Source of the DNA: Phallusia mammillata
Taxonomy: Eukaryota
Direction: 5' to 3'
DNA: 64,000 bases
NCBI GenBank assembly: GCA_965637545.1
Contig: OZ281495.1
Location: 2,666,001-2,730,000 of the forward strand
Made by a program: the position numbers and the translations under genes. Positions 538 to 62,700 of the stretch are shown here, one piece after another. Below the pieces are notes generated by a model. That model was not told the origin of the DNA and did not search any database. It saw only the letters and a list, made by a program, of their open reading frames with translations. The number at the start of each line of letters is the position of its first letter. The stretch's first letter is position 1.

Positions 538-1298
538 ATCAAACTGACGAATTCAATCAACACATTCAAAATTACGTTGATTCATTAAATACAAAAAAGT
601 ATGACGAAGCAAAAATGACAAAACAACAACTCTCAAGGTCAATCACAGGTCAACCAGGGGTCACTGCAAAAAACCTGGAAGAAAAAGCCACGAAATTTAG
701 AGATGACGGAAAATATTTGGAAGCCATTTTGTTTTTTAGCATTGCCGCAGATTTCTATCTGAAGAAAAATCCCGACTCCGCTGTAGCGAAAAGTGTAGCT
801 CTGTGTGCGATGAGAATTCAAAGCACAATCAAACTTTTGATGAAAAATTCTGATTCATCTTCGAAGTCGAGAAACATAGAAATCGTGCGCGATCATGTGA
901 TCCCACTGATGCGTGACATGATTCAGCAAATCCGCGACCTTCAAATAAACGAAGAAATTCGATGTGAATGGGAGGTTTGGTGTTTGGGTCACATTGAAGT
1001 GTGTCAACGTCTCATAGGGGATTTGAAATCGAGCGAAACAACAATAAAACTTGGACTTGAACTTATGGAAACAAAGTTCGGGAATGAAAGTTCAAAGTAT
1101 CAGATCTACGGTGGCTTGTTGAACAATCTTGGTGGTGTTTACGGTGAAACTTCACGATTCAAACAAGCAATCGAATGTTACACAAAAGCAATCGAAGTTT
1201 ACAAAACAGCGGAGGATTTAACTGAGAAACAACGAGGAGACGAGATTGCAATAAGTGAAAGGGGTTTGCAAATATGCAAAGCGAAGTTGATCAAGTGA
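538..1298 (+). CDS. U0: terminal TPR-domain exon of a kinase-linker-TPR paralog (5' part lies upstream of the window)
   Basis: Acceptor tttcctgcAG at 536-537, phase 1. Open to TGA 1296-1298. TPR motif YGGLLNNLGGVYGETSRFKQAIECYTKAIEVYK. Same length (761 nt) and acceptor context as the U1 terminal exon 25698-26458. The ORF-track start at 507 is intron sequence. Confidence 0.85.
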
Positions 1299-5424: not shown

Positions 5425-8400
5425 TTAGATGTGATCGGATATATTTTGAAACCAGTCGCTGAATGCTGTATCGCATTCATGTACTGTCCGATATCCACCT
5501 TGTAACTTGGTTGTGGGGCATTTTAGGACAAGATGGTCTGTGTCTTGCTTATTTGCTCCACAGTGTGGGCATTCCGAACTCGTTCTTTCGCCCCAGCGTT
5601 GAAGCATGTGGGCAGTGCGAGCGTGTTTTGATCGCACTCGGTTCGCTGCTACCCAGTGACGTCTATGTGCTAAGTCGAAACCTGGCAGTGGAGTTGTTGG
5701 GTCGTCTACTAGCTCTCCTCCAGCGGGCATGTTATTAAACCAATATTGTTTCCATTCTTCAGTCATATCGAAAGTGTTGTCAGTCTCTAAGTTGTAGATT
5801 GGATGCCTGGATTTTAGTCTACGTGTTTTTGGTGCTTGTCTTATAATTTTGGTGAGGGGAATTTCCTCTGGAAGTGTTTGAAGATTCTGTATCATCTTCA
5901 TAGCTGATGCTCTGCGTCGTAAGTGTGGGGGAGGTATTGCACTCATTGTTGGTAGCCAAGTAATAGGGGTGGATTTTAGAGTTCCTGATATTATTCGCAT
6001 TGTTCTGTTCAGTTGGATGTCCAATTTTTTAGTGTGAGTACTACGCTCCCATGTTGAAGCACAGTATTCTGCAGCGCTATAACACAAAGCCAAGGCAGAT
6101 GTTCTCAGGACTGATTGACTTGCTCCCCATCTAGTGGCTGCTAGTTTGTTGATCAGTGAGTTTCTAGTTTTTATCTTGTTTGATAGTTTCTGCAAATGTT
6201 GTCTATAATTTAAAGTTCTGTCTAATGTTATTCCAAGATACTTCGGATTGGGGTCCGTTGGCAGTTGCTTTCCATCGATTATAATATTGAGTTGTTGGTT
6301 TGCGCGGTGATTGTCCAGGTGGAAAAGAGTTGTCACTGTTTTAGTGGTGTTCATTTGTAGATACCATGTCGTGAAGTATTCCTGGAGAGTGGTGAGATCA
6401 GCTGTGAGTTGGTTTTGAATCGTTGTTAGACAATTTCCTTGATAAGTTAGTGCCCAGTCATCCGCATAGCCGAATTTAAGACATTTGGTTTTAGGCATGT
6501 CTCTGATGTATATGTTGAATAGTGTAGGGGACAGTACGGAGCCCTGAGGTACCCCGTTTTTTATTTTAAAAGTTTTGCTGGTGTCGGAACCTACACATGT
6601 GTAGAAGCGACGAGTACCTGTCATTTTTGATATGATTCGCAGCATGGTTCTGCATTTTATTATTTTGGCTAGTTTTAGTAGAAGACCATCATGCCATACT
6701 GTATCGTAGGCAGCTGATAAATCTACGAATATGGCTCCAGTTGTGTTTTTTAGTTCATATCCTGTTTCAATGTGTGATGTTAAAGCAAGGACGTGTTCAC
6801 TGGTGCAACGATGTTTTCTAAACCCAGATTGTTCAGAGGGTAAGAATGGTTCGACTAGTGGCGTTATTCTGGCAAGTATGATTCTTTCCAAAACTTTGTA
6901 GGTGCAGCATAGAAGAGAAATTGGCCTGTAACTGCTTGGGTTGGTTGGATCTTTTCCTGGTTTCAAAATTGCTATCACTTTTGCTATTTTCCAATCTTTG
7001 GGAAGTTGTCCAGTTTGAATAATGTCTGTCAATGCGGTCCTCAGCCATTGAAGACTGTTATTTCCTAGATGTTTCAGCATTTCTGGGTAAATTCCATCTA
7101 TTCCAGCAGCTTTGCTCGCTTTTGTTTGCTTTAGCGCCTCTTTTAATTCTGACATTAGTATATGTGATGACAGGTTGGAATCTTCCGTGTATGTGCGGTA
7201 TAGTTGTTGATATTCTTTTCTTACAGATTTTTCAAAAGTGTGGTTTGGTTTATGGTGTCCTCGTTGTTTAATTTCCTTTGCGATTTGGTTTGCACTTATC
7301 GGAGCTGCAGTTTTGGGCTTTGATGTTGAATTAAGGTCCAGTTTATGTAGAAGTGCCCATGCTTTACGGCTTGAGTGTTTGAAGTCGAGATTTTCAACTG
7401 TACTGATCCATCTGTTTCTCCTGTCTTTATTAAGCGATGATAATAGTTGGTCTGCTGTATTATTGTCATTTGTTTCTTCGTAAGCTTTGAACAAGGCCTC
7501 ACTTTCTTTTGACCAGCAGGGAACATACCTTTTTCGTCTACCTCTTGGAATGTAGCGTCTTGCACTTTTTAAAACTAGTTTGTGAAATCTAGGTATTGTT
7601 TGAGCTGATGGAGGAATATGGATGCATGTCTGGTCCACGGCTTTAGCAAAGTTTTCCCAATCAGCTTGTTCGAAGTTCCATCTGTTTTTTGGAAGGGAGT
7701 TGATGATAGGAATTTTTAATCCAACTGTAGTTATTATGGGCCGATGTTGGCTATGTGGAAAGGAGGGCAGAATTTCTGTAGTTGCTGGCAATGGATCAAG
7801 GTTATCGTTTTTTGATACGAGGCATAGATCTGTTGAATAATCTTTGTTCCATCTTGAGGAATGAAAGGTACCCTGGGTTTTGGGGTCGTATAGTAGATGA
7901 AGATTTGTGTCATTTATCCATTGTCCTAATTGTTCGCCTGCTTTGTCGTTTTCATTATATCCCCAGTCGGTGTTGTGGCTGTTAAAGTCCCCAATGTAAA
8001 CAGTGGGGCGAGGAAAGGGTTGGAGAGGAGGATTCGGCCATTCTTTGTTTGGTGGTTTGTACAAGTTAACAACCGTTAGTTCTTTGATTTTTACTGCTGA
8101 TCTGTGAGTGTTGTTGGATGTTAAGACTGATTGCAATTCTGTCACTTCAGAAGGGTTTTTGGCATAGGTGCATATCCCGTATTTGTCATGGCAGATTTTT
8201 GAAATAAGAGTGTATCCTGGTATTCGGGTCTTTGATTCCGGTGATGTTGCTGTAGCGTGGGTTTCTTGGAGTAATGCGATGTCCACTCTGTGTTGGTGGA
8301 GGATTTTCCCAAGATATTCGCATTTGGGCATTGAACTTCCCTCGATGTTAAGTGAAAGGATCTTAGTCTGGTTACAGAGTTCAATGGAGCCTAACTTATT

Positions 8401-8505
8401 TTTCGAACCTGCTGGGCTCTGTGGGTTGTCAGCAGGAACGCGAACGTTTTTATTCTGGGCCACGTTCGATCCAGCATTTTGTTTCATTTCTTTGTAAAGC
8501 ATCAT
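5425..8505 (-). CDS. APE endonuclease + reverse transcriptase + C-terminal CCHC finger (LINE polyprotein, uninterrupted)
   Basis: APE motifs LSLNIEG, LLQETH, GDFNSH, DLCL, SQHRPI. RT motifs YRPISLL, QSGFR, FVDLSAAYDTV, GVPQGSVLSPTLFNIY, YADD, YLGITLD. Zinc finger CPHCG..DTDHLVLKC. Confidence 0.97.
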   Translation of the reverse strand: MMLYKEMKQNAGSNVAQNKNVRVPADNPQSPAGSKNKLGSIELCNQTKILSLNIEGSSMPKCEYLGKILHQHRVDIALLQETHATATSPESKTRIPGYTLISKICHDKYGICTYAKNPSEVTELQSVLTSNNTHRSAVKIKELTVVNLYKPPNKEWPNPPLQPFPRPTVYIGDFNSHNTDWGYNENDKAGEQLGQWINDTNLHLLYDPKTQGTFHSSRWNKDYSTDLCLVSKNDNLDPLPATTEILPSFPHSQHRPIITTVGLKIPIINSLPKNRWNFEQADWENFAKAVDQTCIHIPPSAQTIPRFHKLVLKSARRYIPRGRRKRYVPCWSKESEALFKAYEETNDNNTADQLLSSLNKDRRNRWISTVENLDFKHSSRKAWALLHKLDLNSTSKPKTAAPISANQIAKEIKQRGHHKPNHTFEKSVRKEYQQLYRTYTEDSNLSSHILMSELKEALKQTKASKAAGIDGIYPEMLKHLGNNSLQWLRTALTDIIQTGQLPKDWKIAKVIAILKPGKDPTNPSSYRPISLLCCTYKVLERIILARITPLVEPFLPSEQSGFRKHRCTSEHVLALTSHIETGYELKNTTGAIFVDLSAAYDTVWHDGLLLKLAKIIKCRTMLRIISKMTGTRRFYTCVGSDTSKTFKIKNGVPQGSVLSPTLFNIYIRDMPKTKCLKFGYADDWALTYQGNCLTTIQNQLTADLTTLQEYFTTWYLQMNTTKTVTTLFHLDNHRANQQLNIIIDGKQLPTDPNPKYLGITLDRTLNYRQHLQKLSNKIKTRNSLINKLAATRWGASQSVLRTSALALCYSAAEYCASTWERSTHTKKLDIQLNRTMRIISGTLKSTPITWLPTMSAIPPPHLRRRASAMKMIQNLQTLPEEIPLTKIIRQAPKTRRLKSRHPIYNLETDNTFDMTEEWKQYWFNNMPAGGELVDDPTTPLPGFDLAHRRHWVAANRVRSKHARTAHMLQRWGERTSSECPHCGANKQDTDHLVLKCPTTKLQGGYRTVHECDTAFSDWFQNISDHI

Positions 8506-20850: not shown

Positions 20851-23800
20851 ATGACATCAACAAATGAGGTAAGTAAATGCTGAGGATATTTGTTGCTTTC
20901 TCAGTGAATATTTGGCTAAAAGCGTGGGAATTTATCTTGATATGTCCGATATGGTTTGCATTCAAGTGATTTATTTGAAAAAGCTATGAAAACAAACGAG
21001 CCAAATCCAATTAGAAAGCCACTGACACCGTAAATCACATTAGATAAAAGTTTACTGCATGCCCATAGATGGCGTAAAGAGCAGTTAATAACAGCGTATT
21101 GTTAAGTTTTTCATTTACTTATAATGTAATCATTAATACGCAACGTCACTCAGTCAAAGCAGCCTTAACTGTTTCGTAGAATTTTTTTTTAAACCAGGTA
21201 TTTATAAAGTGCTCTTTGTGCAAACTTTGTCTGCTGTGAGTGATAATGTTTGTAAATTTTCCTGTTATCATGTAAATCTCTTGTGCGCAGTTAAGGGAAT
21301 TGGACTGTGGTGACATCACTTGTAACCTTGACGATTTCATGGCCGGTTCAGGAGGTTTCGGGGATGTTATATTTGGATACCACAATGGGTTAAAGCAACA
21401 AGTTGCCATCAAAGTATTTAAGTTGGCTGGTGGAGCCCAGGAAAAGACACAAGCCACAAAAACGTAAGTTATAAGAATTCCTACACAACACAATAAAATC
21501 GCCACAGGCACTTTATTCAAAATATGTTCTTCAGAATTAAAGAAGAAATGGAACACTTGCTGAAAGCAGATCATGAAAATGTCGTTCGAATTTTTGGCTA
21601 CGTCCAATGGTCTTTTGCAATGGGAATTGTGATGGAATACTGCAAGGGGGGAAATTTAGAAACACTACTAATCGATACATCCAAAGAACTGGGCATTGCC
21701 GTACGCGTTCGTATTTTATACGAAATAGCATCAGCAATGGCTTTCTGTCATAATTTGCCCGATAAACGTTTAATTCATCAGGACTTAAAACCTGGAAATA
21801 TTTTGCTCACTAAAGCACTAAGCTGTAAATTGGCTGATTTTGGAAGCGCCGAACTGGCAACTTATAGTATTTCGGCAACTAGGAATCCTTTGGCACGAAC
21901 CAAGAAAGAAAAGCCTCAATACACTCCCTACTACACCGCTCCTGAAAAACTAAAGGATCTTCTCACAAAACCTAACAAGGAACATGACGTTTACGCATTT
22001 GCTATGATATTATACTGGGTTCTTGCTTGTAAAGCCCCGTATCCACGTCTGGCAGAAGAAGAGCGAAGAGAGTTGTTAGAGGAAATTAAGAGAGGAAAAA
22101 GACCAAACTGCCAACAAATACGGGATTGGATGCAAACTTTGGTCGGTGAAGACAAAGAAATCGCAGAGCAACTCCAACTACTGATGAAGCGATGCTGGGA
22201 TCAAGATCCCACAAAACGTCCCACAATGACTGAAATAAAAAAAGAATTGAAAACGCGTTTGGATAAGCAACAAACCACCAAGCTACTTTCTCAAGTTTTG
22301 ACGACTTTGACTCAAATGAATTTGGACGAGCAACCGCAAGTCATCGAAGGTCGACGCGTTCCTCTTCACTATTTTTCAACCTGGTCCGGAAGTTTTCATG
22401 GTAAAATAGTAATAGAACAATAGAAAATTATTTTAACAAACGATAACTCCCACCCATAACAGAATACATTACCCAGGTTGGAGATAATTTGTCTCGTAGA
22501 AACTTATTTTATCCTAATAATGTTGTTGGTTAAGATGTTGCCATTTCTTGTGTGGCAATTTTAACTGTGGTAGTAAAATCTTTCTTATTTTTAGTTCCTT
22601 CCACATCAGTTGACACCGATAGACAACCATCGGGACCGACAGAGGGGGCACTAGAGCAAGTGCAATCTTCTTCCCAACAAGGCAAAGCTTCTACATCCAG
22701 CAGAAAACAGCAGAAGGGTACAAGATCTATTGAATGGAATTTCGCTCAACTGATAATGTCAACAGTTACATTTATGACACTTTTTAGCTGTTTTGAGTGT
22801 AGAGCAATATCAAACAAACGTTTTGTGTAAATTTTTAATTGATTTAGATCCCACTAGTCACGGTACCGCGGAAAGCTCCACTACACCAGTACAAAAGTTA
22901 ATTGCTCGTTTCAACAGCATATCAGCACAGCAATCTGGAGGTATAACCATCACAAATTCACACTTTGCACAAATTGGTCCGTGTTTTGATTTTCGTGCAC
23001 TTGACGTTACAAAAGCTAAGTATATGATAAGACGTGAAAAAGAATAGGAAGAAATAACCATTTACAAGCAACAATCCAGCACCAGTTTGATAAAAAATAA
23101 ATTTTACTAGTTCTAAACCACGGGGCAATGGACTCAAAAGAAAGAAAATATGTTTTCGTGGGTCCAGAACCTTTAATCTGTTTTGATAATGACACGTTTT
23201 ATTGCGCTAGTTAATGGTTGGTATAAAGCACAACCATTTCGAGAACAGAAAAGGTTAAGAATCACTGGCAACTGACACAGTTTCACCTGAACGTTTTAAC
23301 TTTTAACGGAAAGTTTTTAAATGATAACTTGACAGTTGTTGGGAATTATTTAGGAAAAACAAAACATAATCAGAAAGGAAAACACAAACTAATCTTGCAA
23401 CATAAATTAAATAGTGTATATTTGTAAAACATGTTTTTAGAGCCATCCACTTCCGATGACGCAAAGAAACGTTCTATCAAACCAGCGGGGGGCGCACCAA
23501 AGCAATCACAATCCCGTTTTTCTCAACAAGAAGAAATTCCCACCACCAGCAAACCACAGGAACCTGGTATGAGATGCATTAACTCGGGAACTTAGAGATA
23601 ATTAAACATGTTGATTGAATTTATTACATTTGATTACTCTGTGACAAACGTATTTGCAAACATTTTTTTTGAAAATCATCTTGTTCGAATTTATAATCTT
23701 TAGATCCTATCATACACGATGATGAGAAAATGCCCATTGCACCACGAGAGGAAATCGCTCATTCCAGCAGCACATCACCACAGGAACCTGCAGGTAAACC

Positions 23801-26458
23801 AACAACAAAGTCATAGTTTCTACAATAGCCCGAACATGGATGTTTGTAAAGCCGTCAATGAAAATTTATTTGCAACAAGCCACAACCAGTTTAATGGAAA
23901 ATTAATATTTATCTAGTTCTAAACACCGAGTCAATGGACTCAAATAAGGAAAATCAACTGTAGAGTTTGTGTGTGCCAGGTCTACCCCACGGCGTGCAAA
24001 ATATGTTTTTCTTCAATCTGGTTTCATAAGTACACATTTTTTATTGCGTACCATAATGGTGAATGTGAGATTTTTAGTTCCATCCACTTCAGATGACAAT
24101 AAGGAACGTTCTGATGCACCAACAAGGGGCGCACAAGGGTCATCATAATTTTAACGATTTGTTTGCATTGGATGAATGATTTTTCTAAAATACTATTTTA
24201 TTCTTAATCTATGTTTTTTAGATCCGTTTAGAGACGGTGACGAGAAAAGACTAATGCCACCACGTGAGGAATTCGCTCATTCCAGCAGCACGTCACCACA
24301 GCAACCTGCAGGTAAACCAACAAACAGTTGCTAAGAGTTGCAAATGCACCTTTTCAAAACAAAAGAAAAAAGTACAATCACCAACAGAAATATTGTCTAT
24401 ATGTCGTCAAAGAAATATTTATCGTTTAAAATTCTATTTTTCTGTAGATCCTATCAGACAAAATTCCAAGAAACGCTCGACAACATTCTTACAAAAGATA
24501 TTCCCCCGTTTTGGCAAAACATCACCAAAGCAACCTGTAGGTAAAGTGGATTTGATCTTGTGTAGCCTACTGGCATCCAAAAGCTGCAAATATAACGTTT
24601 TTTGTTGTCCGTATTTTTTTCCGAACTTAACAGCCAACCAGTTTTGGTATGGGAGCTTATCCTGTTAACGGTTATGTTTTAACGAGTAAAAAAGCGTTTC
24701 CGAATTTGTAAACGGTCAATTGTCAATTTACCATTTTTTTAGATCGTATCAGTCACGACAGAAACTTTAGATCTTGCAAACACTAATTTAACTTTGTTTA
24801 AACCTTACCGTTGTTAATGATGCCGATTGCAGCACCTTTTTTGCTGTCAATCAAAAATTAAATCGAAATTGTCGTAATAAACTTCGTGAATCCTATAATA
24901 TGAGTTTGACGTCATAAATTTGTTTTTATTTATTTTCGTCACAAAACATGAAGCAGTGGAACTTTTAGGTGCAGCGGGCGTGAAACAGCAAAAATGTTTC
25001 CAACGAAATTCGAAATTTTGTCAGAGCGTTCTTAAAAATTATTGATTAAAGACGGGCCTACGTGATATCAATGAGTGGGTTAAAGCAAAATTGTTAACAT
25101 ATTGGAGAAGAGATGTTACGCCCAAAAGTGTGATTTAGCCTACGTCTGTTTATATCTTATCTTAAATTATCCAAAAATTAAACCACTAATTTTGCCTAAA
25201 TGCAACTATTTTCCAAAGTAACTATAGGGTATTTTGATCCATAAATTGTTTTAAACTTACACCACGTTAGAATTTTATCATTGGGAAATAATATATTCGT
25301 ATTATTCCTGATACTAGGCCTGCTTTTAAAACAACAAAATTCCTGTTTGTATCTTAGAATGTGACAAACATGTCAATAGCTCTGGCTCTAGTGGGAGACA
25401 AAACTGACAAGCTGATTTCGTACAAAAAATAATTTTGTTTAAACTTTTTTACTAAATTGGAGACAAAATGTCACACTGCAAAAAACCAAATATTTAGCAT
25501 TATGTCGTCAAAACCTTGTTATTATGTCAGGGTTATTTAAAAGTTAAATTTAAAATTTTTTGGTATTTAACACTAAAACACATTTATTACTATAAAATGG
25601 CTTTACATGAACCGGTGTCAAATTACGATCAGTTTTTTTTTTTTGTTTTTTATTTCTTGAAACTAAAATAAAAACATCTTTTTTTATTTCCCTGCAGACC
25701 AAACCGACGAATTCAATCAACGCATTCAAAATTATGTTGATTTATTAAAAACAAAAAAACTCGACGATGCAAAAACGACAAAACAACAACTTTTATGGTC
25801 AATCACAGGTCAACCGGGAGCCACTGCAGAAAATCTGGAAGAAAAAGCCACGAAATTTAGAAATAAAGGCCAATATTTGGAAACCATTTTGGTTTTTAGT
25901 ATTGCCGCAGATTTCTATGTGAAGAAATTTTCCGACTTTACTGTAGCGAAAAGTGTAGTTGTGTGTGCGCTGGAAATTCGAGAAACAATCAAACTTTTGA
26001 TGAAAACTTCTGATTCATCTTCGAAGCCGAGAAACACAGAAATTGTGCGTGTTCACGTGATCCCACTGATGCGTAAAATGACTCAGCAAATCCGCGACCT
26101 TCAAATAAACGAAAAAATTCGATGTTATTGTGAGGTTCGGTGTTTGCATAACATTGAACTGAGTCAATATTACATCGGGGATTTATCATCGAGGGAAACA
26201 ACTATAAAACTTGGACTTGAATTTATGGAAACAAAGTTCGGGGATGAAAGTTCAAAGTATTCTATCTACGGCTCTTTGTTGAACAATCTTGGTGATGCTT
26301 TTGAGAAAACTTTACGATTAAACGAAGCAATCGAATATTACACAAAAGCAATCGAAGTTTACAAAACAGCGGAGGATTTAACTGAGGAACAGCGAGGAGA
26401 ATATATTGCGACAAGTGAGGTTGGTTTGCAAGAAACCAAAGCAAAGTTGAACAAGTGA
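20851..26458 (+). CDS. U1: RIPK-like Ser/Thr kinase + repetitive linker + TPR domain, 10 coding exons, 810 aa
   Basis: Exons 20851-20868 (MTSTNE), 21291-21463, 21535-22400, 22595-22717, 22848-22940, 23441-23566, 23704-23793, 24222-24311, 24448-24540, 25698-26458. All introns GT-AG with compatible phases; total 2433 nt, no internal stop. Motifs GSGGFGDV, VAIK, EEMEHL, IHQDLKPGNIL, ADFG, YTAPE, CWDQDP.KRP. Confidence 0.85.
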
Positions 26459-32200: not shown

Positions 32201-33569
32201 CTCGGTAACGGGACAGTTTAGCTGAATGCATTTTGTCATTATACAAGAAAAATTAACAGTGCATTGACTTTTATCAAACTTATTGTCTTGTGAACCAACA
32301 ATTTTTTTAGTGCCCTCCACATCAGGTGAGAAACAATCCACTAAGCCAACAAAAGGCGCACGTAAGCTCGTAAAGACACGAGAGGAATTTCCCACCTTCA
32401 AAACACAACAACAGCAACCTGGTATAAGATGTATTGAAACGTTGGAAAGTAGTTATCGTTTAAAATATATAACTGGCAACGCTAAAAAATCAGTGTTTTT
32501 AAACAACATTTTTGAACGAAACATTTGATCAAAATTAATATTTGTTTAGATCCAATCGAACACGATGACGAGGTACGCTCCATCGCATCATTAAAACTAA
32601 TTGCCAGTTTCAGTAGCACATCTCCACAGCAACCCACAGGTAAACTAATCACAAAGCGACGCGGTATAAAAAGTATTACCTCGTCTACTGACTTTTAAGT
32701 GCTTGACCTTGTAAACAGAATATTTGTATTAGTATTTTCTTGACACCTGCAATGCAGTTAAAACAGCACTCTCATTTTTCTCAGATGGAAATGTCGACTT
32801 CAACCAACGCATACACAGTTATTTTGAGTTATTAATATCTGGAAACGCTGGAAAAGCAGAAAAGATTAAAAAACAACTTTTAAAATCAATCGAAGGACTA
32901 CCAGGGCTCACCGCGGATAACTTAATCAGAAAAGCTAAAAAACTTCGATATGACGGCAAATATTTGAAAGCCATTTTGTTTTTTCGCATTGCCGCAGATT
33001 TCTATGCGAAGAAAAATCCTCACCTTACTGTAGCGAGAAGTGTAACTGTCCGTGCATTTGAAATTCGAGATACAATAGAACTTCTGATGGAAAAATCTGA
33101 TTCAACTTTTAAGTCAAAAAACAAAAAAATTGTGCGCAATCACGTGATTCCACTGATGCACGACATGACTCGGCAAATAAGCGATCTTCTAATTAACCAA
33201 AAAATTCGATGCGAATGGGAGGTTCGCTGTTTGGGTTGTATTGCCTGGAGTCAATATTACATCAGGGATTGGACATCGAGCGAAACAACAATAAAACGTG
33301 GACTTGAACTTATGGAAACAAAATTTGGCAATGAATGTTCGAAGTATCGAATCTATGGTACCTTGTTGAACTATCTTGGTTTTGTTTGCGAGGAAACTTC
33401 ACGACTCGAAGAAGCAGACGCAAATTACACAAAAGCAATCGAAGTTTATAGATCAGTGAGAGATTTAACCGAGGAAGATAAAGAAGAAAGAATTGCAAAA
33501 GGTGAAAGGTATTTAAAATCCAACAAAGCAAAGTTGGACAAAATTACAAATTTGCTGCAAAAACAGTGA
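29240..33569 (+). CDS. U2: kinase-deleted paralog; putative linker+TPR protein (~399 aa from ATG 29501) or pseudogene
   Basis: Exon-1 homologue ATGGCTACAACGAAACAA|GT (29240-29257). Decayed exon-2 relic ~29310-29390 abutting the decayed end of exon 3 (~29405-29537, donor kept). Open phase-1 exons 29884-29976, 31356-31439, 32311-32421, 32550-32639 and TPR exon 32785-33569. 29501-29537 plus these exons = 1200 nt in frame. Confidence 0.6.
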
Positions 33570-34159: not shown

Positions 34160-35520
34160 TCTAGTGGGGAATCCCCTCGCCTGGTTGAGAACCACAAGCA
34201 TGAGAATTGTAAAACCATTACATAGCAAAACTTTTGCCAGTTTTGGCCTGTCCCTAACCTTTCGAAAGATATGCACAGCTGCACCTGGAAAAGAATTGGA
34301 GTTCCTCGACGTTCTCCATGTTACGTCCGACACCACCGCAACAGGTTTTACAACTAAAGATTACGTTAAACCTACGGCTGTATCCCGTCGTTTTTTAAAT
34401 GGATTTTCGCACCATCCTCCTTGCCTATTCAAATCAATTGTTTTTTCGGAAGCAGTACGCATGCGCCGCCTGAATGAAAATGATGCCGACTTCATCCACA
34501 GCCTTAAGAGGTTGCAGCCAAAATGTATACTTTCTTGCTTTCCTAAGAAAATGACTTCGGACATAATCACACTAGCTTCCACCTGGAAACAACGGTTTGG
34601 ACCTAATACTATGCCGCAGGAGCCACACAAAAGAGTTGTCTGGGCTACAAATTTTCCACGCATCCTTCACCTGACAGGCAAAGAAAAAGCGCTGAAACCC
34701 GGGGCTTGCATTACGTTCAAACGTCCCAAAACACTGGGCGCAATACTATCAAAAAAGCACGTACTGGATATGTCGAGTCAACAGGCTGGTGGATATTCAC
34801 GACCATGCGGCAAATGCGCATTGTGTGGTTGTAGAAAGGGGTTCAAAGCTATGGTTCCTTCCGTTTCCTATGTCACCACCCCTTCCAACCACTCTATTCC
34901 TCTAAGGCAACAACTGACATGCAAAAATTATGGCATATACGTGGCCACCTGCACCACATGCAAAGAACAATACGTGGGGCAAACGAAAAACCGTTTGAGC
35001 ACAAGATGGAACGCACACAGATCAACGTGGCGAACAGGGGACGTAACAGACAGCAAGAGCAAACAAACCGGACATATCAAGTTGGTTTTCGGTAATATTT
35101 GTTGAAGAGCCGCCTATGAGCCGGTTAGATATTTGTGAGGACAAATGGTTGAACGACCTAAAGGCGACCATAAACATACAACCAATGATTTTGCCACAGG
35201 TAAAATAATCAGCTTTCTGACACCTTGTACGCACGACCCCTTATCACTTAATGACGTCATCACCTTCTTACATGTGTTAGTTTTTTCGTTTGCTACCGGC
35301 CCCTTTATTGCCACCCCCCATTTTAGCAGTCAGTCAGCTTTGGTGTTATTTGCAGACCTTCTCCATTGTTTTTCATCGCTTTGGTCTGAATTTGCGGCTG
35401 TTACTTGCTTAGTATTTTACCGTTTTAGCTTTTATGTGTTTTTATCGTTCTTTTCTTTTTAGACGGAAACTGACGATGCCAAAATAGGCGAAATTAATAT
35501 TTCTGTTTTTCAAAAATAAA
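34160..35520 (+). mobile_element. 5'-truncated Penelope-like element (RT C-terminus + GIY-YIG), frameshifted
   Basis: FLDV..GFTTKDYVKPTA..FLNGFSHHP..KSIVFSEAVRMRRL; CGKCALC linker; GIYVATCTTCKEQYVGQT..RWNAH. After a frameshift near 35080: FVEEPP..LDICEDKWL..INIQPMILPQVK*. AATAAA at ~35515. Confidence 0.92.
35461..35508 (+). ncRNA. Minimal type I hammerhead ribozyme in the PLE 3' repeat
   Basis: AGACGGAAA CUGACGA U GCC AAAAUA GGC GAAA UUAAU A UUUCUGUUU. Stem I 9 bp (2 G-U), core CUGANGA/GAAA, stem II GCC/GGC, palindromic helix III AUUAAU, predicted cleavage after A35499 (AUA). Confidence 0.8.
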
Positions 35521-41200: not shown

Positions 41201-44200
41201 CCAGGTTTTTGCCCCATTTTCTTTGGTGGGTCATAATTAGTTTTTGTTCAATCGTAATGGCAACAGTTACTGTTTGTCATTTTGTTCAATTCTGACATAA
41301 TACAGTAATACAAGCCACTTGTTTCATAAGTGCTTTAATACCGGCAATTTTTTGCTTTACCAAAATAAAGCATTGTATCTTTAGCATCTGTACACAAACA
41401 TGAAAAAGATGAAGAAATAAGTTTTTGCTGTCAACAAAATTTCGTTGTGTTTCTGCTTAGGAACAACGCGAACAATGCTCTTTGTTACGTCAAAAAAGAA
41501 ATTAAAACCTTAGTGCAGGGGTGCACCTGCATCGCAGATTCTTATTTCACCAACGACCGCCTGCTTATTTTTGTTTTGTTGATATTATGTATTTACCATC
41601 TAATAGCGCCCAAAAAGCCCAAATTAATTTCTAGCTCGGTACACAGATTGGCTGCACAGCGAGGAGATCACTTAAGTGTTTATTATGTCATAATCTATAT
41701 TGTGATGCTTGTGGTACCTGTTTTGTTCGCATTGTTGGCACACAATAGGCGTACAAAACGTCTGATACATATAGTTATTAGGCTGGTAATACTCTTTTTA
41801 GTGCCACAAAAACTGTTTCGAGATGTTTAAAACAGCCCTGCCTAAGTTTAACCTTCCAGGGTTTTGATACACTAAAGTCAAAAACGAGTATTTGTATTGC
41901 ACTTCAAAAATACGTTCGATCGAACCCCAGGGGTTCGGCAACGCCGAATCCCGGTTAAGAACCACTGGCCTAAACCGTTTCACAGAAATTTCTTTTGAAA
42001 GAGGTATTAGTGCTCTTTGCGTTTTATACCTATTTTTTTACCAAACTTTGTCTCATGTGAGTGCTACCATTTGTATATTCTCATCTCTTCTGTACAGTTA
42101 CGGGAATTGGACTGTAGTGACATCACGTGCAACCTTGATGACTTTGTGGCCGGTTCAGGAGGTTTCGGGGATGTTCTATTTGGATACCACAATGGGTTAA
42201 AGAAGGAAGTTGCCATCAAAGTATTTGAGGTAGCTGGTGGAAAAAAGAAAAAATCACTCGCTGTGAAAATGTAAGATTTGTCACATACAAAACCACCTTA
42301 GCAAAATTGATTGAAATATTCTTTAGGATAGAGGAAGAAATGGAACACTTGCTGAAAGCAGATCATGAAAATGTCGTTAAGATTTTCGGCTACGTTCAAT
42401 GGTCTTTCTCAATGGGAATTGTGATGGAATACTGCAAAGGTGGAGATTTAGAAACACTACTAATGGATACATCCATAGAACTGGACCTTGCTGTGCGCCT
42501 TCGCATTTTATACGAAATAGCATCAGCATTGACTTTCTGTCACAACTTGTCAGACAAACGTTTAATTCACCAGGACCTAAAACCTGGAAACGTTTTGCTT
42601 ACCAAAGAACTAAGCTGTAGATTGGCTGATTTTGGTTCCGCCGAACTGGCAACATATAGTATTTCGGCAACTGTGAATCCTTTGGCACGAACCAAGAAAG
42701 AAAGACCACAATATACTCCCTACTACACCGCTCCGGAAAAATTGAAGGATCCCACCATGAAACCAAGGAAGCAGCATGACGTGTATGCATTCAGTATGTT
42801 ATTGTATTGGGTCTTGGCTCGTAAAGCACCTTATCCACGTCTGGCAGAAGAAGAGCGAAGGGGGTTATTGGAATTAATTAAGAGAGAAAAAAGACCAGAC
42901 TGTCGAGAAATACAGGATTGGATGCAAACTTTGGTCGGTGAAGACAGAGAAATCGCAGAGCAACTCCAACTACTGATGAAGCGATGCTGGGATCAAGATC
43001 CCACAAAACGTCCCACAATGAATAAAATAAAAAAAGAATTAAAAAAGTATTTAGACAAACAGAAAACCAAGCTACTTTCTCAAGTTTTGACAACTTTGAC
43101 TCAAATGGATTTGGACGAGCAACCGCAAGTTATCGAAGGTCGACGCGTTTTTCTTCATTATTTTTCAACCAAGTCCAGAAGTTTTCATGGTAAAATATTA
43201 AACACACAATAGCGGTAACTTCCGCGAGAAACAGAATACTTTACCCAAGTTGGAGATAGTTTGTCTCGCGGAAACTTATTTTATCCTAATAAAGTTGATG
43301 AATAAGATGTTGCCAATTGTTGTGTGGGGATTTTTTATTATGTTCTGTGGTAGAAAAGTCTTTAATATTTTTTAGTTCCCTCCACATCAGGTGACACCGA
43401 TGGACAATCATCTAGACCGACAAAAGGCACACGAGAGCAAGTACAATCTCCTTCCTATCAAGACAAGGTGTCTCCATCCAGCAGACAAAAGAGGGAGGGT
43501 ATGAGATATATTGAATTGAATTTCGTTCAACAGATATTGCCAACAGTTACATGTGTGACACTTCTATCTGTTTGTGTTGCTGAACATTTTCAAACAAACG
43601 TTTTGTGCAAATTTTAATTGATTAGATTCCACCAGTCACGTTGCTGCAAGACGCTCCTCGACGTCAGTACGAAAGTTAAACACTTTGGGGTGTATCGTGT
43701 AATTGTGCACTTGACGTTACACAAGCTAAGTTCATAATGACATAGCGTGAAAAATAATAAGAAAACATAAAAATTTATACGCAACAATCCAGCACTAGTA
43801 ATCTTATTAACTTTTAGTAATCTTATTTAATTGACAATAGCTGAATATTCGGTGACAAACGATTTGTTTGCATTGGATAAGTGATTATTTTAAACTATTA
43901 TTTTATTCTTAATTGATGTTCTTCAGATCCAGTTGGACACGGTGATGAGAAACGCCCCACTGTACCACAAGAGGAAATCGCTCATTCCAGCAGCACATCA
44001 CCACAGCAACCTGCAGGTAAACCAACAAGCAGTTGCTAAGAGTGGCAAATGCACCTTTTCAAAACAAAAGAAAAAAGTACAATCAGCAACAGAAATACTG
44101 TCTATATGTCGTCAAAGAAATATTTATCGTTTAAATTTTTTTTTTGTATATCCTATCAGCCAAAATTCCAAGAAACGCTCGACAACATTCTTGAAAAAAA

Positions 44201-46278
44201 TATTCCCCCGTTTTGGCAAAACATCACCAAAGCAACCTGTAGGTAAAAATGTTTGATCTTGTGTGCTGGCATCCAAAAGCTGCAAACATAACGTTTTTTG
44301 TTGTCCGTATTTTTTGTCCGTGCTTAACAGCCAACCAGTTTTGCAATTATTATGGTTCAAGCAACGAAATAGTTGATTAGTTTGTTGTCAATCACATATT
44401 GCAACACATTGCCAACTGTCAATTAATTTAATAATTGTAACTAATTTGCTGTGGGGATCTTAATGTAATTCCACATGTTTGTTGACGTCGATACTAATAT
44501 CTACTCTTAACTACCAATTAAATTGTTGTAAAAAAATCTTTTTTGAGATTTTTGTGTCTTTGCCAGTTTATTCCGTGAAAAAACAATCCAACAATCCAAC
44601 AAAGGGCGCACATGAGGCAGTACAAACTTAATTTTAACAAATGGTAATTCCCAGAAGCAGCTATCTGGTATGACTGCAATGACTTGTTCGAACTCATCCT
44701 GTTAACAGTTATGTTATAACCACCGACTAACGAGTAAAAAAAACGTTTTCGGCATTATAAACGGTCAATTGTCAATTTACTATTTCCTCAGATCGTATCA
44801 GTCACGACCCAAACGCTCGATCTTGCAAACACTAATTTAACGATGTTTTTACCTTAACCAGGGTTGCCATTGACATGGATCCCAAAATAAGGACACCCGA
44901 AAAATTAAATTTTAGACAAAATGAAGCCAACGTTTTAAACAATCTTTACACTGCTATGAGCCATGACATATTACATGCCATATATGTTACCAGAAATAAT
45001 CCATTTAAGCAACTCTTTGTTCGTAGAAAATACGAGTATCTTACGAGTTACGACAGCTCCGGTCTAGGTTTACTTTTACTTTAAGCAGGAATCTGATTGT
45101 TATTTCGGTACAAAATAAGGAATCAGATCAAAAACAAGGGCATTTCTATAAATAAGCACAATAAATTTTACTAAAACATTGCCCTTCGAAATAAAGCCGA
45201 TGGCAACATCTTTTCCACTGTCAATCAAATCATTAATTAAAGCGAATCGCGGTAACAAACTTCGTGGAAATCCTAAAATATGAATTGACGCCATTAATGC
45301 CCCTGGTGCGTGATGTACACTGCGTGGAATTTATCTTGTCTTTGTCATATATTGCATAAGATAAAACCTCTAAGTTTCCTTTTTTATTTATTTGCATCAC
45401 AAAAACATAAAGCAGTGGAACGTGTGGTCGCAGCTCAAGTTTAGTAGGCGAAAAACGTCTACAAATTTATTATTTATTTCTTATTTTTTGGAACTAAAGG
45501 AAAAAATATTTACTTTTTTGCAGACGGCGAATTCAACCAACGCATTCAAAACTATATTGATTTATTAAAAACAGAAAAGTATGACAAAGCAAAAACAACA
45601 AAACAACGACTTTCAAGGTCAATCACAGGTCAACCAGGGGTCACTGCAGAAAACCTGGAAAAAAAAGCCACAAAATTTAAAAATGACAGCAAATATTTGC
45701 AAGCAATTCTATTTTTCAGCATTGCCGCAGATTTCCATGTTAAGAAAAATCCCGGCTTTGCAGTAGCGAAAAGTGTAGCGATATGTGCAGAGGGAATTCG
45801 CGACACAATCAAACTTTTGATGAAAAATTCTGATTCATCTTTAAAGACGAGAAACAAAGACATCGTGCGCGATCACGTGATCTCACTAATGCGTGACATG
45901 ACTCAGCAAATCCGTTGCCTTCAAATAAACGGAAAAATTCGAAGTGAAATGGAGGTTTGGTGTTTGCATTCCATTGAACTGAGTCAATATTACATCGGGG
46001 ATTTGGCATCGAGGGAAACAACAATAAAACTAGGACTTGAACTTATGGAAACAAAGTTTGGGAATGAAAGTTTAAAGTATTCAATCTACGGTTACTTGTT
46101 GAGCAATCTTGGTGTTGTTTGCGGTAACACTTCACAATTCAAAGAAGCAATCGAATATTTCACAAAAGCAATCGAAGCCTACAAAACAGCGGAGGATTTA
46201 ACTGAGGAACAACGAGGAGAAGAGATTGCAAAAATTAAGAGGGGTTTGCAAATATGCAAGGCAAAGTTGAACAAGTAA
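38215..46278 (+). CDS. U3: RIPK-like kinase + short linker + TPR domain, ~673 aa
   Basis: Exons 38215-38232 (MTSANE), 42098-42270, 42327-43189, 43376-43498, 43927-44016, 45524-46278; GT-AG, 2022 nt in frame. Linker exons at 43626, 44150 and ~44567 are damaged and presumed skipped. Confidence 0.8.
41123..41967. mobile_element. hAT/Charlie-type MITE, 845 bp, in U3 intron 1
   Basis: Perfect 15-bp TIR CAGTGGTTCTTAACC. 8-bp TSD GCCTAAAC at 41115-41122 and 41968-41975. Confidence 0.92.
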
Positions 46279-47690
46279 TTAAGTTTGCTGCAAAACAACT
46301 AAAGTTTTGTCTGTGACACAATTATTGTGAAAGAAATTCACATTGTAAATATATTTTATGTTTAATTTTTTGCTTTTGTGCAAAATTGCTGCATTTAGTG
46401 ACGATTTTTTGTACAAATGTAAAAATAAAACTTACTCTTCATAAATTTGATAAAAATTCAATGTTTTGAAGAGACTTTTCATAGAACATCATTTCCAGGT
46501 AAAATTAAAAAAAAAGAATTTGACGTAAATGCAGAGTTAACTAGTTGTATATAATTGCAGGTTTCTTTAAACATAGCGCATTTGTTTTAGTGATAAGGCT
46601 TTGGTGTAAATATAAAATGTTTTTCCAGACGTAGTGAAATTCAATTGTATTTGTATTAGTTTTTTTTAAAAAAATTGTCATGTATTTTTAACTTCGCCAT
46701 TAGAAACGCCATTAAAAATCACGATAGTTTTTAGTTAATATAAAGAGAACAACAAACTTTGGTTTAAAAGTAAAATGATTTGGCAGTTTTTGCATCTGAC
46801 CAACCACAGTTTTGGTTAGTATCGAGAAACAACAAACCTTTATAAGTTGTATCGGACCAAATACAACCATCTGCGCCTTTTTAACACCAACAAGTTTCCA
46901 CAAGAAAATTTCAACTGTTATTTGGTTGTCAGAAGCTCCTATATAAGCATTTTTGTCACCAGTTTTCACCACGTTTCCTGCAAAAGTTAAACTTATAATA
47001 AAATCACTAGGTAAACAAGAGAGTAAAGGGACAAATGTTGTTTGCTCTAAAAATTTGAAACTAAATTCTATAAACATGGTCACGAGTGAGTTTTTAGTTT
47101 TGTGTATTTTTTTTTCATACAAACACAAGTAATTGAGCCAACCAAGGGTCACCATAACCCTTGAAACTAGAAGAGACATTTGTTTATACTTTCACTATCT
47201 TTGATTTAAAAGGAAAGGGTTTTGTATAGTGCTTGGAGGCGTACATGTGTGAGGAAACAGGTGTAACAATTCTCAGAAACATCTAAAAACACAATTCGTC
47301 TGTCTGTTTTTCGTCACACAGATCACGTATAATGATGAATCGAAAAGCACAAAACAAGTCTTTCTTACTTCACAGCAGTTGTAATCAAACCCAACCTGGA
47401 TTTGAGTTCTTGCTTTGACTCTTTCTGTTAATTTTATTTTTGCTTTAGATGATCCCAAGTGTTTCAATTTGTTTTTATCGCTGCTGATCAAGAGCCTCAT
47501 CATACCACTGTATGAAGCAAAGTAAAACATTGAGGAAAAATCAATAACTTTTTTTAATGTTTTTTTTTTAACTTTTAATGTTTGCATGCAATTAAAGTAT
47601 GACATCACAATGAAAGAGTACATACTTGTGACATCACAAAACAATTACTTAATCAGTTCCACGACAGTTTCTTATCTTTTCCGAGTAGGT

Positions 47691-47815
47691 GATCACGTGA
47701 TCGCACTGATGCGTAACATGGTCCAATAAATTCGCAACTTACAAATAAAAGAAGAAATGCGATGTAAATGGGAGGTTTGGTGTTTGCATTACTATGAAAT
47801 GAGTCAAGGCAACAT
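47691..47815 (+). pseudogene. Relic of a further TPR exon
   Basis: Translates DHVIALMRNMVQ*IRNLQIKEEMRCKWEVWCLHYYEMSQ, homologous to DHVIPLMRDMIQQIRDLQINEEIRCEWEVWCL, with an in-frame stop. Its counterpart at ~3214-3240 (DHVIPLMHN) is interrupted by the 6-kb TIR element. Confidence 0.8.
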
Positions 47816-59752: not shown

Positions 59753-62700
59753 ATGACTTCGCCGAAAGAGGTAAGCAACTTCTACAAATTTTTTTCTTTT
59801 GTTTGTTTGTTCATTACACTAAACAGGTTTTATTTGTCCACCGTATGAAAAAGTATAGTTTCAAATTAGACTACCGGGATTCAAATAAATTTGTTTTAAA
59901 TTTTTCTTTTAATCCTAAAGTATTTTCGTTCCTTCCTATTTTGGGAGGATCTACTAACACAGAAACTCACACCACAAAAAGTTTCTTAAATACCGATCGA
60001 TGGTGAAAAGAGCGCAGTTATTCAAATTACAATTGCGTCTGGGGTAGGGTTAAATGAATGAATTTAACATAAACTGGGTTTTTGGGCTGATTTCAGTGTT
60101 ATTGTGAAACCTCAGACCAACCCCCATAGCCCTAACCGTCAGCATTTTTTTTACAAAGTGCATTTAAGATTTTTGAGTGCGCTCTCTGCCGGAATTATTT
60201 TTGAGTGCGCACTTTACTGGAAATTAGTAGGCCTGTGATGTAAGGTCCTGTGTTAGTAGCTCTAAGGCCCTTTTGTGCTTTCTAGTGACTGATAATGTTT
60301 AGCTAAGAGTTAAGTTTAGGAGGACTTACTGACATAATCCGCTTTCTTTTTCTATATAAACCATTTTAACACTCTGAAACTAGTCGATAACTATGTTTTA
60401 CTCAACTCGCTCTGACTTGTCTGATAAACCTAAATTTGTAGCAGAGAATTTGTTTCAAAAACAAATCTTGCAATGTAAAAAACTGGGTTTTAAATTACTC
60501 AGCAATTACTAAAGCCCAACGGGATTTGAATCAAAAACTTTTCGTTTGCAAACCGGTTGAACAAAGTTTTGAATAACATTGGTTAAGTTAGTTGTATGGC
60601 TTGGTTGGACCTCAATGAAATATACGTTGGACATCAGGGGTAAAAACATAATCTTTCTGTGTCACAGTTACGGGAATTGGATTGTGGTGACATCACATGT
60701 AACCTTGACAAATTCGTGGCCGGTTCAGGAGGCTTCGGGGATGTTATATTCGGATACCACAATGGGTTAAAGCAAGAAGTTGCCATCAAAGTGTTTGAAG
60801 TATCTGGTGGAACCCAAGAAAAGGCGCGGCTTGAAAAAACGTAAGTTATACGATTTGTTATATAGAGCGGTGCAAATCTATCGCAAATATGGAAGAAACG
60901 TACTATTTAAGATTAATTTTGTGTTGATGACTTCACAACAATTTGTAAAATATGATAATGAGGTAACAAATCGAAATTAAATTTTAAAAAATGGCAATTT
61001 TGAAAACATTTGCTAATTTTATATATTGTGCTGGTGTATCTGGTATATGTGTGGACTTACAAAACTAGTTATACCTCAAAAGCTTCGTCCAGCGGCATTA
61101 ATTCCATGGACTACACGATAATGACAAACTACTGCGCAATCTTAGATGAATTAACCAGCAAAGCGCGCCAGCCATCGTGACTACTAATCTTGGTTGGCCT
61201 GCTTGATTTCCTGATGTGTGGTGCGAGATGCGACATTTTTAATCATTGCTAAAAACCGAAGATTAAAAAGCGAGGAATGCGGGTTGTGTGACGTTTGATA
61301 AATTGTTTTCAATCATTTTGTTGAGGGGACATACCACCTCACCTGTCCTACCGAGATCTTTGCTTTGCGTTATTACATGCACAAAACGTAACATGCAGCT
61401 GAAAAAAAAACTCTCTTTTTAGAATCAAAGAAGAAATGGAACACTTGCAGAAAGCAGATCATGAAAATGTCGTTCGGGTTTTTGGCTATGTCAAATGGAC
61501 TTTCGCAATAGGAATTGTGATGGCATATTACAAAGGCGGGAATCTCAAAGAGCTACTACAGGATACATCAAAAGAACTGGGCCTTGCTTTGCGTGTTCGT
61601 ATTTTATACGAAGTAGCATCAGCAATGGCTTTCTGTCACAATTTACCTGATAAACGTTTAATTCATCAGGACTTAAAACCCGAAAATGTTATGTTTTCTA
61701 AAGAGCTCCATTGCAAAATAATCGATTTTGGCGGGGCCGAACTGGCAACTTACAGTATTTCGGCAAATGTGAATCCTTTGGCACGAACCAAGAAAGAAAG
61801 GCCTCAATTCACTCCCTATTACACAGCTCCTGAAAAACTGAAGGACCTCAGCATGAAGCCTAGGAAGCAACATGATGTTTACGCATTTTCAATGATCATC
61901 CACTGGGCACTAAATCGTAAAGCTCCGTATCCACGTCTGACTCAGGAAGAGCGAAGAGAGTTATTAGAGGAAATCAAGAAAGGAAAAAGACCAGACTGCC
62001 AGGAAATACAGGATTGGATACAAACTTTGGTCGGTGAAGACAAAGAAATCGCAGAGCAACTCCAACTACTGATGAAGCGATGCTGGGATCAAGATCCAAC
62101 AAAACGTCCTACAATGACTGAAATAAAAGAAGAATTGAAAACGCGTTTGGATAAGCAACAAACTACCAAGCTACTTTCTCAAGTTTTGACAACTCTGACT
62201 CAAATGGATTTAGACGAGCAACCGCAAGTCAGCGAAAGTCGACGCGTCCCTCTTCACCATTTTTCACCCCGGTCCGGAAGTTTTCACGGTAAATTAATCG
62301 GTCAATACATATAAATTTATTATAATAAGAAGTAACCCCGAGTAGAAGCAGATTTCCTTGCCCGAGACGCTTTGGAACTGGTAGTCAAAACAATTAAGTT
62401 GAGAGATAATGTGACAATGTGATCTGTTATATTTCTTGGCGGTTCAGAAGTTACACAGTAACATAAAAAAATCTAAAGGTATTAAGTCGTTTTGTCATAT
62501 CACCCATCTATATTTCAGTGCCCTTCACATCGGGTGGAACCGAAGGACGGTTAAGCGAAACAGCGGAGGGCGTACAAGAGTTGCCTTCTTCTCAGCAAGG
62601 TAAAAAATCCTCCCAGAGTAAAAAAAAAATAGTAGGATTTAACAATGTCAATTGTTTTTTCGTATAAAACCTTCAGCATCCCCGTACTAGAACTAGGGTG

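Follow-up and report, generated by a model that had tools for sequence, protein, structure and literature searches.

A tandem array of RIPK-like kinase genes in Phallusia mammillata, an ascidian, contains four intact copies of a 252-residue terminal exon, all within the 64,000-nucleotide stretch of contig OZ281495.1 (positions 2,666,001 to 2,730,000) that was analysed here and is called the window below. The domain that they encode has a TPR- and 14-3-3-like anatomy, its variation falls on alternate helices, and the two classes of helix differ in their rate of replacement. From this pattern we infer a groove faced by the variable stripes, a ligand bound in it and positive selection as the source of the excess rate. 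We regard it as likely but unproven, with a probability of about 0.55, that this binding groove has diversified, each paralog having been selected for a different partner. Copy-specific partner binding fits the four copies, which support it and cannot prove it.

The kinase gene array and its terminal exons

The DNA of the window is eukaryotic and AT-rich, and contains both introns and retroelements. The terminal exons and the kinase exons found in it are:

538-1298, plus strand: terminal exon c1, encoding the 252-residue TPR-like/14-3-3-like domain, with an AG acceptor at 536-537 and a frame open to the stop
25698-26458, plus strand: terminal exon c2, with an aligned acceptor, an open frame and 74% protein identity to c1
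32785-33569, plus strand: terminal exon c3, the most divergent copy, with 59% protein identity to c1
45524-46278, plus strand: terminal exon c4, with an aligned acceptor and an open frame
47526-47807, plus strand: degenerate fragment of a fifth TPR-type exon (tblastn: 41 residues at 61-66% identity, and a longer, weaker match of 116 residues)
21524-22423, plus strand: kinase-domain open reading frame belonging to the c2 gene and serving as the control exon (Pfam Pkinase, 6e-38)
42307-43212, plus strand: sister kinase exon of the c4 gene (Pfam Pkinase)
61436-62314, plus strand: another sister kinase exon (Pfam Pkinase)

All four terminal exons are in phase 1, with aligned acceptors and frames uninterrupted over 250-260 codons; in c1 the first full codon begins at 540 and the stop lies at 1296-1298. 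Copies c1, c2 and c4 align without gaps from residue 4 to the stop, c4 carrying an in-frame 6-base deletion at its 5' end. The exon DNA of these three copies (84-86% identity) is about as similar as their flanks (70-85%), and all four frames are open despite this near-neutral overall divergence, even that of c3, whose branch measures about 0.7-0.9 substitutions per codon. The fragment of a fifth exon sits 1.2 kb downstream of c4.

Kinase open reading frames lie about 4 kb upstream of c2 and of c4, with another at 61436, and the three match Pfam Pkinase at 1e-35 to 6e-38. Their nearest solved chains are RIPK1 (1.5e-30 for the c2 kinase), RIPK4, RIPK2 and RIPK3. The kinase exons of c1 lie upstream, beyond the edge of the window, and no kinase open reading frame of at least 100 residues was found upstream of c3 within the window. 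The kinase, linker and terminal exons were searched separately rather than as one joined spliced protein; the product of a public Phallusia mRNA, P0157, matches in order the tail of the kinase exon, the linker exon and the terminal exon, and kinase and tail therefore belong to one transcript in at least one paralog. The window holds at least two complete units joining a RIPK-like kinase to a C-terminal eleven-helix cup.

Several mobile-element-like sequences accompany these genes. A non-LTR retrotransposon is suggested by an intact 1026-residue open reading frame on the minus strand between the first and second gene units (5425-8505), which contains endonuclease- and reverse-transcriptase-like sequence. 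A long inverted repeat at about 2420-2835, whose arms of roughly 150-190 bases are rich in GGCGGGACG motifs, looks like a foldback or MITE-type element. Just 3' of the kinase-less c3, a 313-residue open reading frame on the plus strand (34164-35105) ends in a GIY-YIG-like motif, read by eye, as in Penelope-type elements.

The nearest public proteins are uncharacterized and come from P. mammillata itself (66-76% identity), five Phallusia proteins in total having been retrieved by word searches for close paralogs, and remoter relatives occur in Ciona, Styela and Clavelina. Metagenome and Logan contigs 1-47 kb long supply many other family members (the P0158, P0014, P0015 and P0020 clusters among them), so that its range may be wider than the four ascidians named here. 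Literature searches yielded no description of an ascidian kinase-TPR family. The Phallusia protein P0152 (590 residues, in the same 90% cluster as P0004) has N-terminal Cys-rich sushi-like repeats and a hydrophobic membrane-spanning segment. Since it carries the TPR-like domain without a kinase, the domain is a module common to kinases and a putative membrane receptor; kinase-less proteins with this domain are also present in Ciona and Styela. P0001, P0002 and P0157 are identical over one block (domain residues ~100-142) and diverge sharply after it, a mosaic that points to gene conversion between paralogs or to a chimeric assembly of transcripts. In Ciona intestinalis (AP043569.1, 11337-21570), several duplicated exons for the N-terminal half of the domain lie beside two full-domain exons, so that half-domain exons are found there and a single terminal exon in Phallusia. 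This locus was dropped as an independent codon replicate: it offers two full-domain exons only, its exon structure is different, and at 45-70% protein identity to the queries its silent sites would be saturated.

Anatomy of the domain and placement of its variation

The AlphaFold2 model of c1, a confident one (pLDDT 90.9, pTM 0.87), consists of eleven helices in hairpins, namely H1 (residues 2-17), H2 (21-35), H3 (43-55), H4 (59-76), H5 (80-103), H6 (106-132), H7 (138-158), H8 (162-179), H9 (183-201), H10 (204-222) and H11 (229-251). Sequence models detect one TPR motif per exon only:

1110-1211, plus strand: sole canonical 34-residue TPR motif (Pfam TPR_1), helices H9 and H10, residues 191-224

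It scores 29.8 bits in c1 against a cut-off of 27.8, with profile positions 4-31 aligned, and 27.2, 25.9 and 14.3 bits in c2, c4 and c3, all under that cut-off. The helix pairs within one copy are thus dissimilar, because only one of them matches TPR models. Foldseek searches with the c1 model retrieved the TPR domains of KLC and LGN (E 5e-5 to 1e-3) at a TM of only 0.4-0.5, and Pfam 14-3-3 gave no match at E up to 1 in any of the four copies. As modelled, the terminal domain is a TPR-like cup that globally most resembles 14-3-3. The groove of 14-3-3 proteins is formed by helices C, E, G and I. If the nine helices H3-H11 are colinear with 14-3-3 helices A-I, then H5, H7, H9 and H11 would correspond to C, E, G and I, and by this analogy the variable stripes of these four helices would line the inner groove, their facing being deduced from TPR/14-3-3 topology rather than from model coordinates. 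The codons and patches in question are:

1113-1115, plus strand: codon X, c1 residue 192, TPR position 2 (paralogous codons at 26273, 33360 and 46093)
1134-1136, plus strand: codon Z, c1 residue 199, TPR position 9 (paralogous codons at 26294, 33381 and 46114)
804-824, plus strand: hot patch on H5, residues 89-95, in which residue 91 has 6 states in 6 paralogs
984-1013, plus strand: hot patch on H7, residues 149-158, with a variable stripe at 144, 147, 150/151, 154 and 157
1230-1277, plus strand: variable residues 231, 235, 238, 245 and 246, forming a stripe on the final helix, H11

The original prediction had placed two hypervariable codons, X and Z, in a TPR helix among near-identical neighbours. 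They do lie in such a helix, at positions 2 and 9 of the exon's sole canonical TPR motif; all eight codons that it quoted stand where it put them and read as it gave them, and the two further hot patches that it named match the sequence. Near-identity describes the structural residues that flank X and Z and does not extend to the exons overall, which share 74-86% of their DNA and 59-76% of their protein sequence among the four copies. The silent-site identity of the flanking TTG TTG and CTT GGT codons, to which it had also drawn attention, is within chance, since the four copies are identical at 80 of the 250 codons (32%), and it was for the same reason rejected as a sign of conversion.

X reads G, S, T and Y in the four copies and takes six states among eight paralogs (a non-redundant set of the four window copies and four public Phallusia proteins); Z reads G, D, F and V and is a different residue in each of the eight. 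At least five base changes are needed at X, against a mean of 1.21 per codon, and substitutions cluster within codons beyond position-wise shuffling. Although X and Z belong to the only five of the 250 aligned columns in which every copy has its own residue, this count was set aside as uninformative alone, about 3.7 such columns being expected under uniform rates by a hand estimate. The hot positions overall are residues 91, 144, 151, 154, 188, 192, 199, 238 and 245. In TPRs, positions 2 and 9 are known to be concave, ligand-contacting and most variable, and the variable ligand-facing positions of helix A are 2, 5, 9, 12 and 13 (Magliery and Regan 2005, PMC1261162).

Among the eight paralogs, the columns with at least five residue states (n=8) all lie on H3, H5, H7, H9 and H11, and H4 and H8 are the most conserved helices. 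The scatter over the convex face and loops that the original prediction had linked with relaxed constraint was thus not found, the high-state columns being all on alternate helices. Structurally tolerant positions were defined on a set of 78 distant relatives without use of the window copies; across these family members the entropy is 3.7 bits at X and at Z, between residues of 0.6-1.9 bits. The A helices are the alternate helices from H1 to H11 (mostly H5-H11) and the B helices are the others. At tolerant positions, the entropy among close paralogs is 1.54 bits on A helices versus 0.85 on B helices (p=0.002), and 14 of 16 candidate selected sites fall on A helices, with 2 on B (Fisher p=0.007), their concave facing again following from topology.

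An earlier set of 24 groove sites, built around a small conserved residue of each A helix, was replaced by this distant-relative partition; its register is partly post hoc, because the helix ends give an H7/H9 offset of about 41-43 residues rather than 48. On that partly post hoc set, P0004 and P0152 have three of their six differences on the stripes, and P0001 and P0002, each compared with P0157, differ at 12 of 18 stripe positions. Hypervariable and conserved codons alternate every 3-4 codons, an interleaving that excludes regional mutation rate and conversion tracts as the cause.

Replacement rates and competing explanations

Codon-level tests were run on the four window copies only, which form a star-like tree, with purpose-written code rather than PAML or HyPhy. 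Pairwise NG86 omega is 0.52-0.86 in the terminal exon, and the kinase exon of these genes has 0.23-0.30. In the terminal exon, the standard site models favour a class with omega above 1 (2dlnL of 25.4 for M1a vs M2a, 25.6 for M7 vs M8 and 25.2 for M8a vs M8), placing ~7% of codons in a class with omega near 9 and leaving about 65% that fit omega=1. Codon X ranks top, with a per-site likelihood ratio against omega=1 of 13.3-16.7 and an NEB posterior of 0.99; at Z the ratio is ~5, nominally significant only (p=0.02-0.03), and the posterior 0.57-0.60. The M1a vs M2a statistic falls to 9.5 when double and triple hits are allowed (p=0.009), to 7.6 with gamma-distributed site rates (p=0.02) and to 4.4 with both together (p=0.11). 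The sites with dN/dS>1 that had been anticipated are accordingly significant in all three standard comparisons and cease to be so once multiple hits and rate variation are both accommodated. Multi-base changes, which had been read as a mark of selection, are the very feature that inflates such tests and a known cause of false positives. In the kinase control exon, the same M1a vs M2a comparison yields 11.8 (p=0.003), partly from serine codon-family switches.

A partition by helix class, in which the exon-wide silent rate is common to the partitions, gives a sharper contrast. Tolerant A-helix sites (n=28) have an omega of 2.55, or 2.18 with multiple hits, and differ from 1 at p=6e-6 and 6e-4, respectively; tolerant B-helix sites (n=21) have 0.88, or 0.81 with multiple hits, and do not differ from 1. 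A and B differ from each other at p=7e-5 (3e-4 with multiple hits), and the result is the same without c3 (p=2e-4). With a looser tolerance threshold and multiple hits, omega for the A helices is 1.39 (p=0.10), and NG86 pN/pS at tolerant A-helix sites, when compared with their own silent sites, is only ~1.15. Groove codons given a partition-specific rate have an omega of ~2 that is not significant (p=0.13-0.25, on the partly post hoc 24-site set). A dN/dS above 1 on the A helices (2.2-2.6) is supported under the common silent rate at the stricter tolerance threshold, and the excess is not significant for groove codons that are free to have their own rate. For the original claim of diversifying selection on a ligand groove, the placement of X and Z at TPR positions 2 and 9 and the A-versus-B contrast speak in favour, and the significant result in the kinase control speaks against.

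The four frames are the terminal exons of ascidian genes duplicated in tandem. In their cup the structural residues and most outer helices (H4, H8, H10) are held constant, and the solvent-exposed stripes of H5, H7, H9 and H11 appear to be replaced faster than the silent sites of the exon. X and Z occupy positions 2 and 9, the classic ligand-contacting ones, in H9, the helix of the canonical TPR. We hypothesize that each paralog has been selected for a different peptide or protein partner in the putative groove, and that the conserved outer face would keep an interface common to all copies, perhaps with the kinase or with an adaptor that they share.

It is possible, though in our judgement rather unlikely, that relaxed constraint suffices, the exposed A-helix positions (TPR 2, 5, 9, 12 and 13 and their equivalents) drifting about neutrally after duplication and multi-nucleotide mutations mimicking an excess. 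The large share of codons at omega=1, the similar identity of exons and flanks in c1, c2 and c4, the loss of significance under multiple hits with rate variation or with a partition-specific rate, and the similar, false-looking signal of the kinase control would all agree with it. So would the generic variability of TPR positions 2 and 9 (PMC1261162): these are the least constrained positions in any TPR, and high variability is to be expected there even without selection. However, sites that are equally tolerant evolve at ~0.9 on B helices and 2.2-2.6 on A helices, a contrast that withstands multiple hits and the removal of c3 and argues against plain relaxed constraint on all exposed surfaces. 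The eight residues of Z in eight paralogs, and the share of stripe differences between the near-identical public sequences P0004 and P0152, also run counter to drift.

Diversification for different partners would equally not be needed if the groove clamped the protein's own linker or kinase in an autoinhibitory manner, the hypervariable residues tracking that segment instead of an external ligand. Plant BSK kinases, in which a kinase is joined to a regulatory C-terminal TPR, offer a precedent, although Pfam TPR_BSK1_C reaches only E=0.28 here. We consider this improbable: the domain also stands behind the Cys-rich, membrane-spanning part of P0152 and in the kinase-less proteins of Ciona and Styela, and a clamp specific to the kinase would not explain such varied N-terminal parts. 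An artefact of misaligned codons, paralog mixing or gene conversion that misled the codon models is more improbable still. The three topologies of the four copies are almost equally likely, with informative sites within the exon split 8/8/7, the public mosaic of P0001, P0002 and P0157 shows a sharp break, and one flagged site, residue 1, adjoins the c4 indel. Yet the c1/c2/c4 alignment is free of gaps beyond that point, the hot codons are single and lie between invariant residues, the protein-level pattern recurs in independent public sequences, and a periodicity of 3-4 codons is beyond the reach of conversion tracts. Diversification of the groove for different partners is thus the reading that we prefer.

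Relation to known repeat receptors and significance

As in TPR1 and TPR2A of Hop, conserved positions 4, 7, 8, 11, 20, 24 and 27 flank hypervariable positions 2 and 9, and X and Z fall at exactly 2 and 9 (PMC1261162). In contrast to generic TPRs, a single 34-residue pair is recognizable here, the other repeats being longer, with offsets of ~42-58 residues, and the open array of such proteins is replaced by a fixed unit of 11 helices. The TPR, ANK and WD repeats of fungal NLRs likewise have few hypervariable positions within conserved helical repeats, on the concave side, and belong to expanded, clustered families whose members join them to a signalling module (Dyrka et al. 2014, PMC4986451); in the Phallusia domain, the concave side is deduced. 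In the fungal proteins, however, variation occurs among near-identical repeats within a gene, with repeat-number polymorphism and concerted evolution, whereas here it lies among paralogous genes at homologous positions, and the partner module is a NOD/STAND ATPase there and a RIPK-like kinase here. The NB-ARC-TPR and ROCO-LRR candidate receptors of Ectocarpus, which have been proposed as ligand sensors, are similarly lineage-specific and physically clustered, with TPR or LRR modules that evolve fast (Zambounis et al. 2012, PMC3341825). They differ in using the shuffling of single-repeat exons, where the ascidian genes have one whole-domain terminal exon and point substitution.

Hypervariability of the concave face is thus a known rule, both for TPRs generally (PMC1261162) and for immune-type receptors of fungi (PMC4986451) and brown algae (PMC3341825), and the pattern alone repeats it, which is useful for annotating the family and not surprising. 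More speculatively, and in our view unlikely as a whole, ascidians may hold a large undescribed intracellular repertoire in which a 14-3-3/TPR-like cup, fused to RIPK-like kinases or membrane receptors and with its groove under true diversifying selection, provides germline-encoded recognition; it would then play the role that LRR or TPR sensors play in other lineages. If the groove is under diversifying selection, these proteins would be candidate specificity sensors or adaptors on a RIPK-like kinase in a chordate without adaptive immunity, and the hot positions would be the residues to swap when testing specificity.
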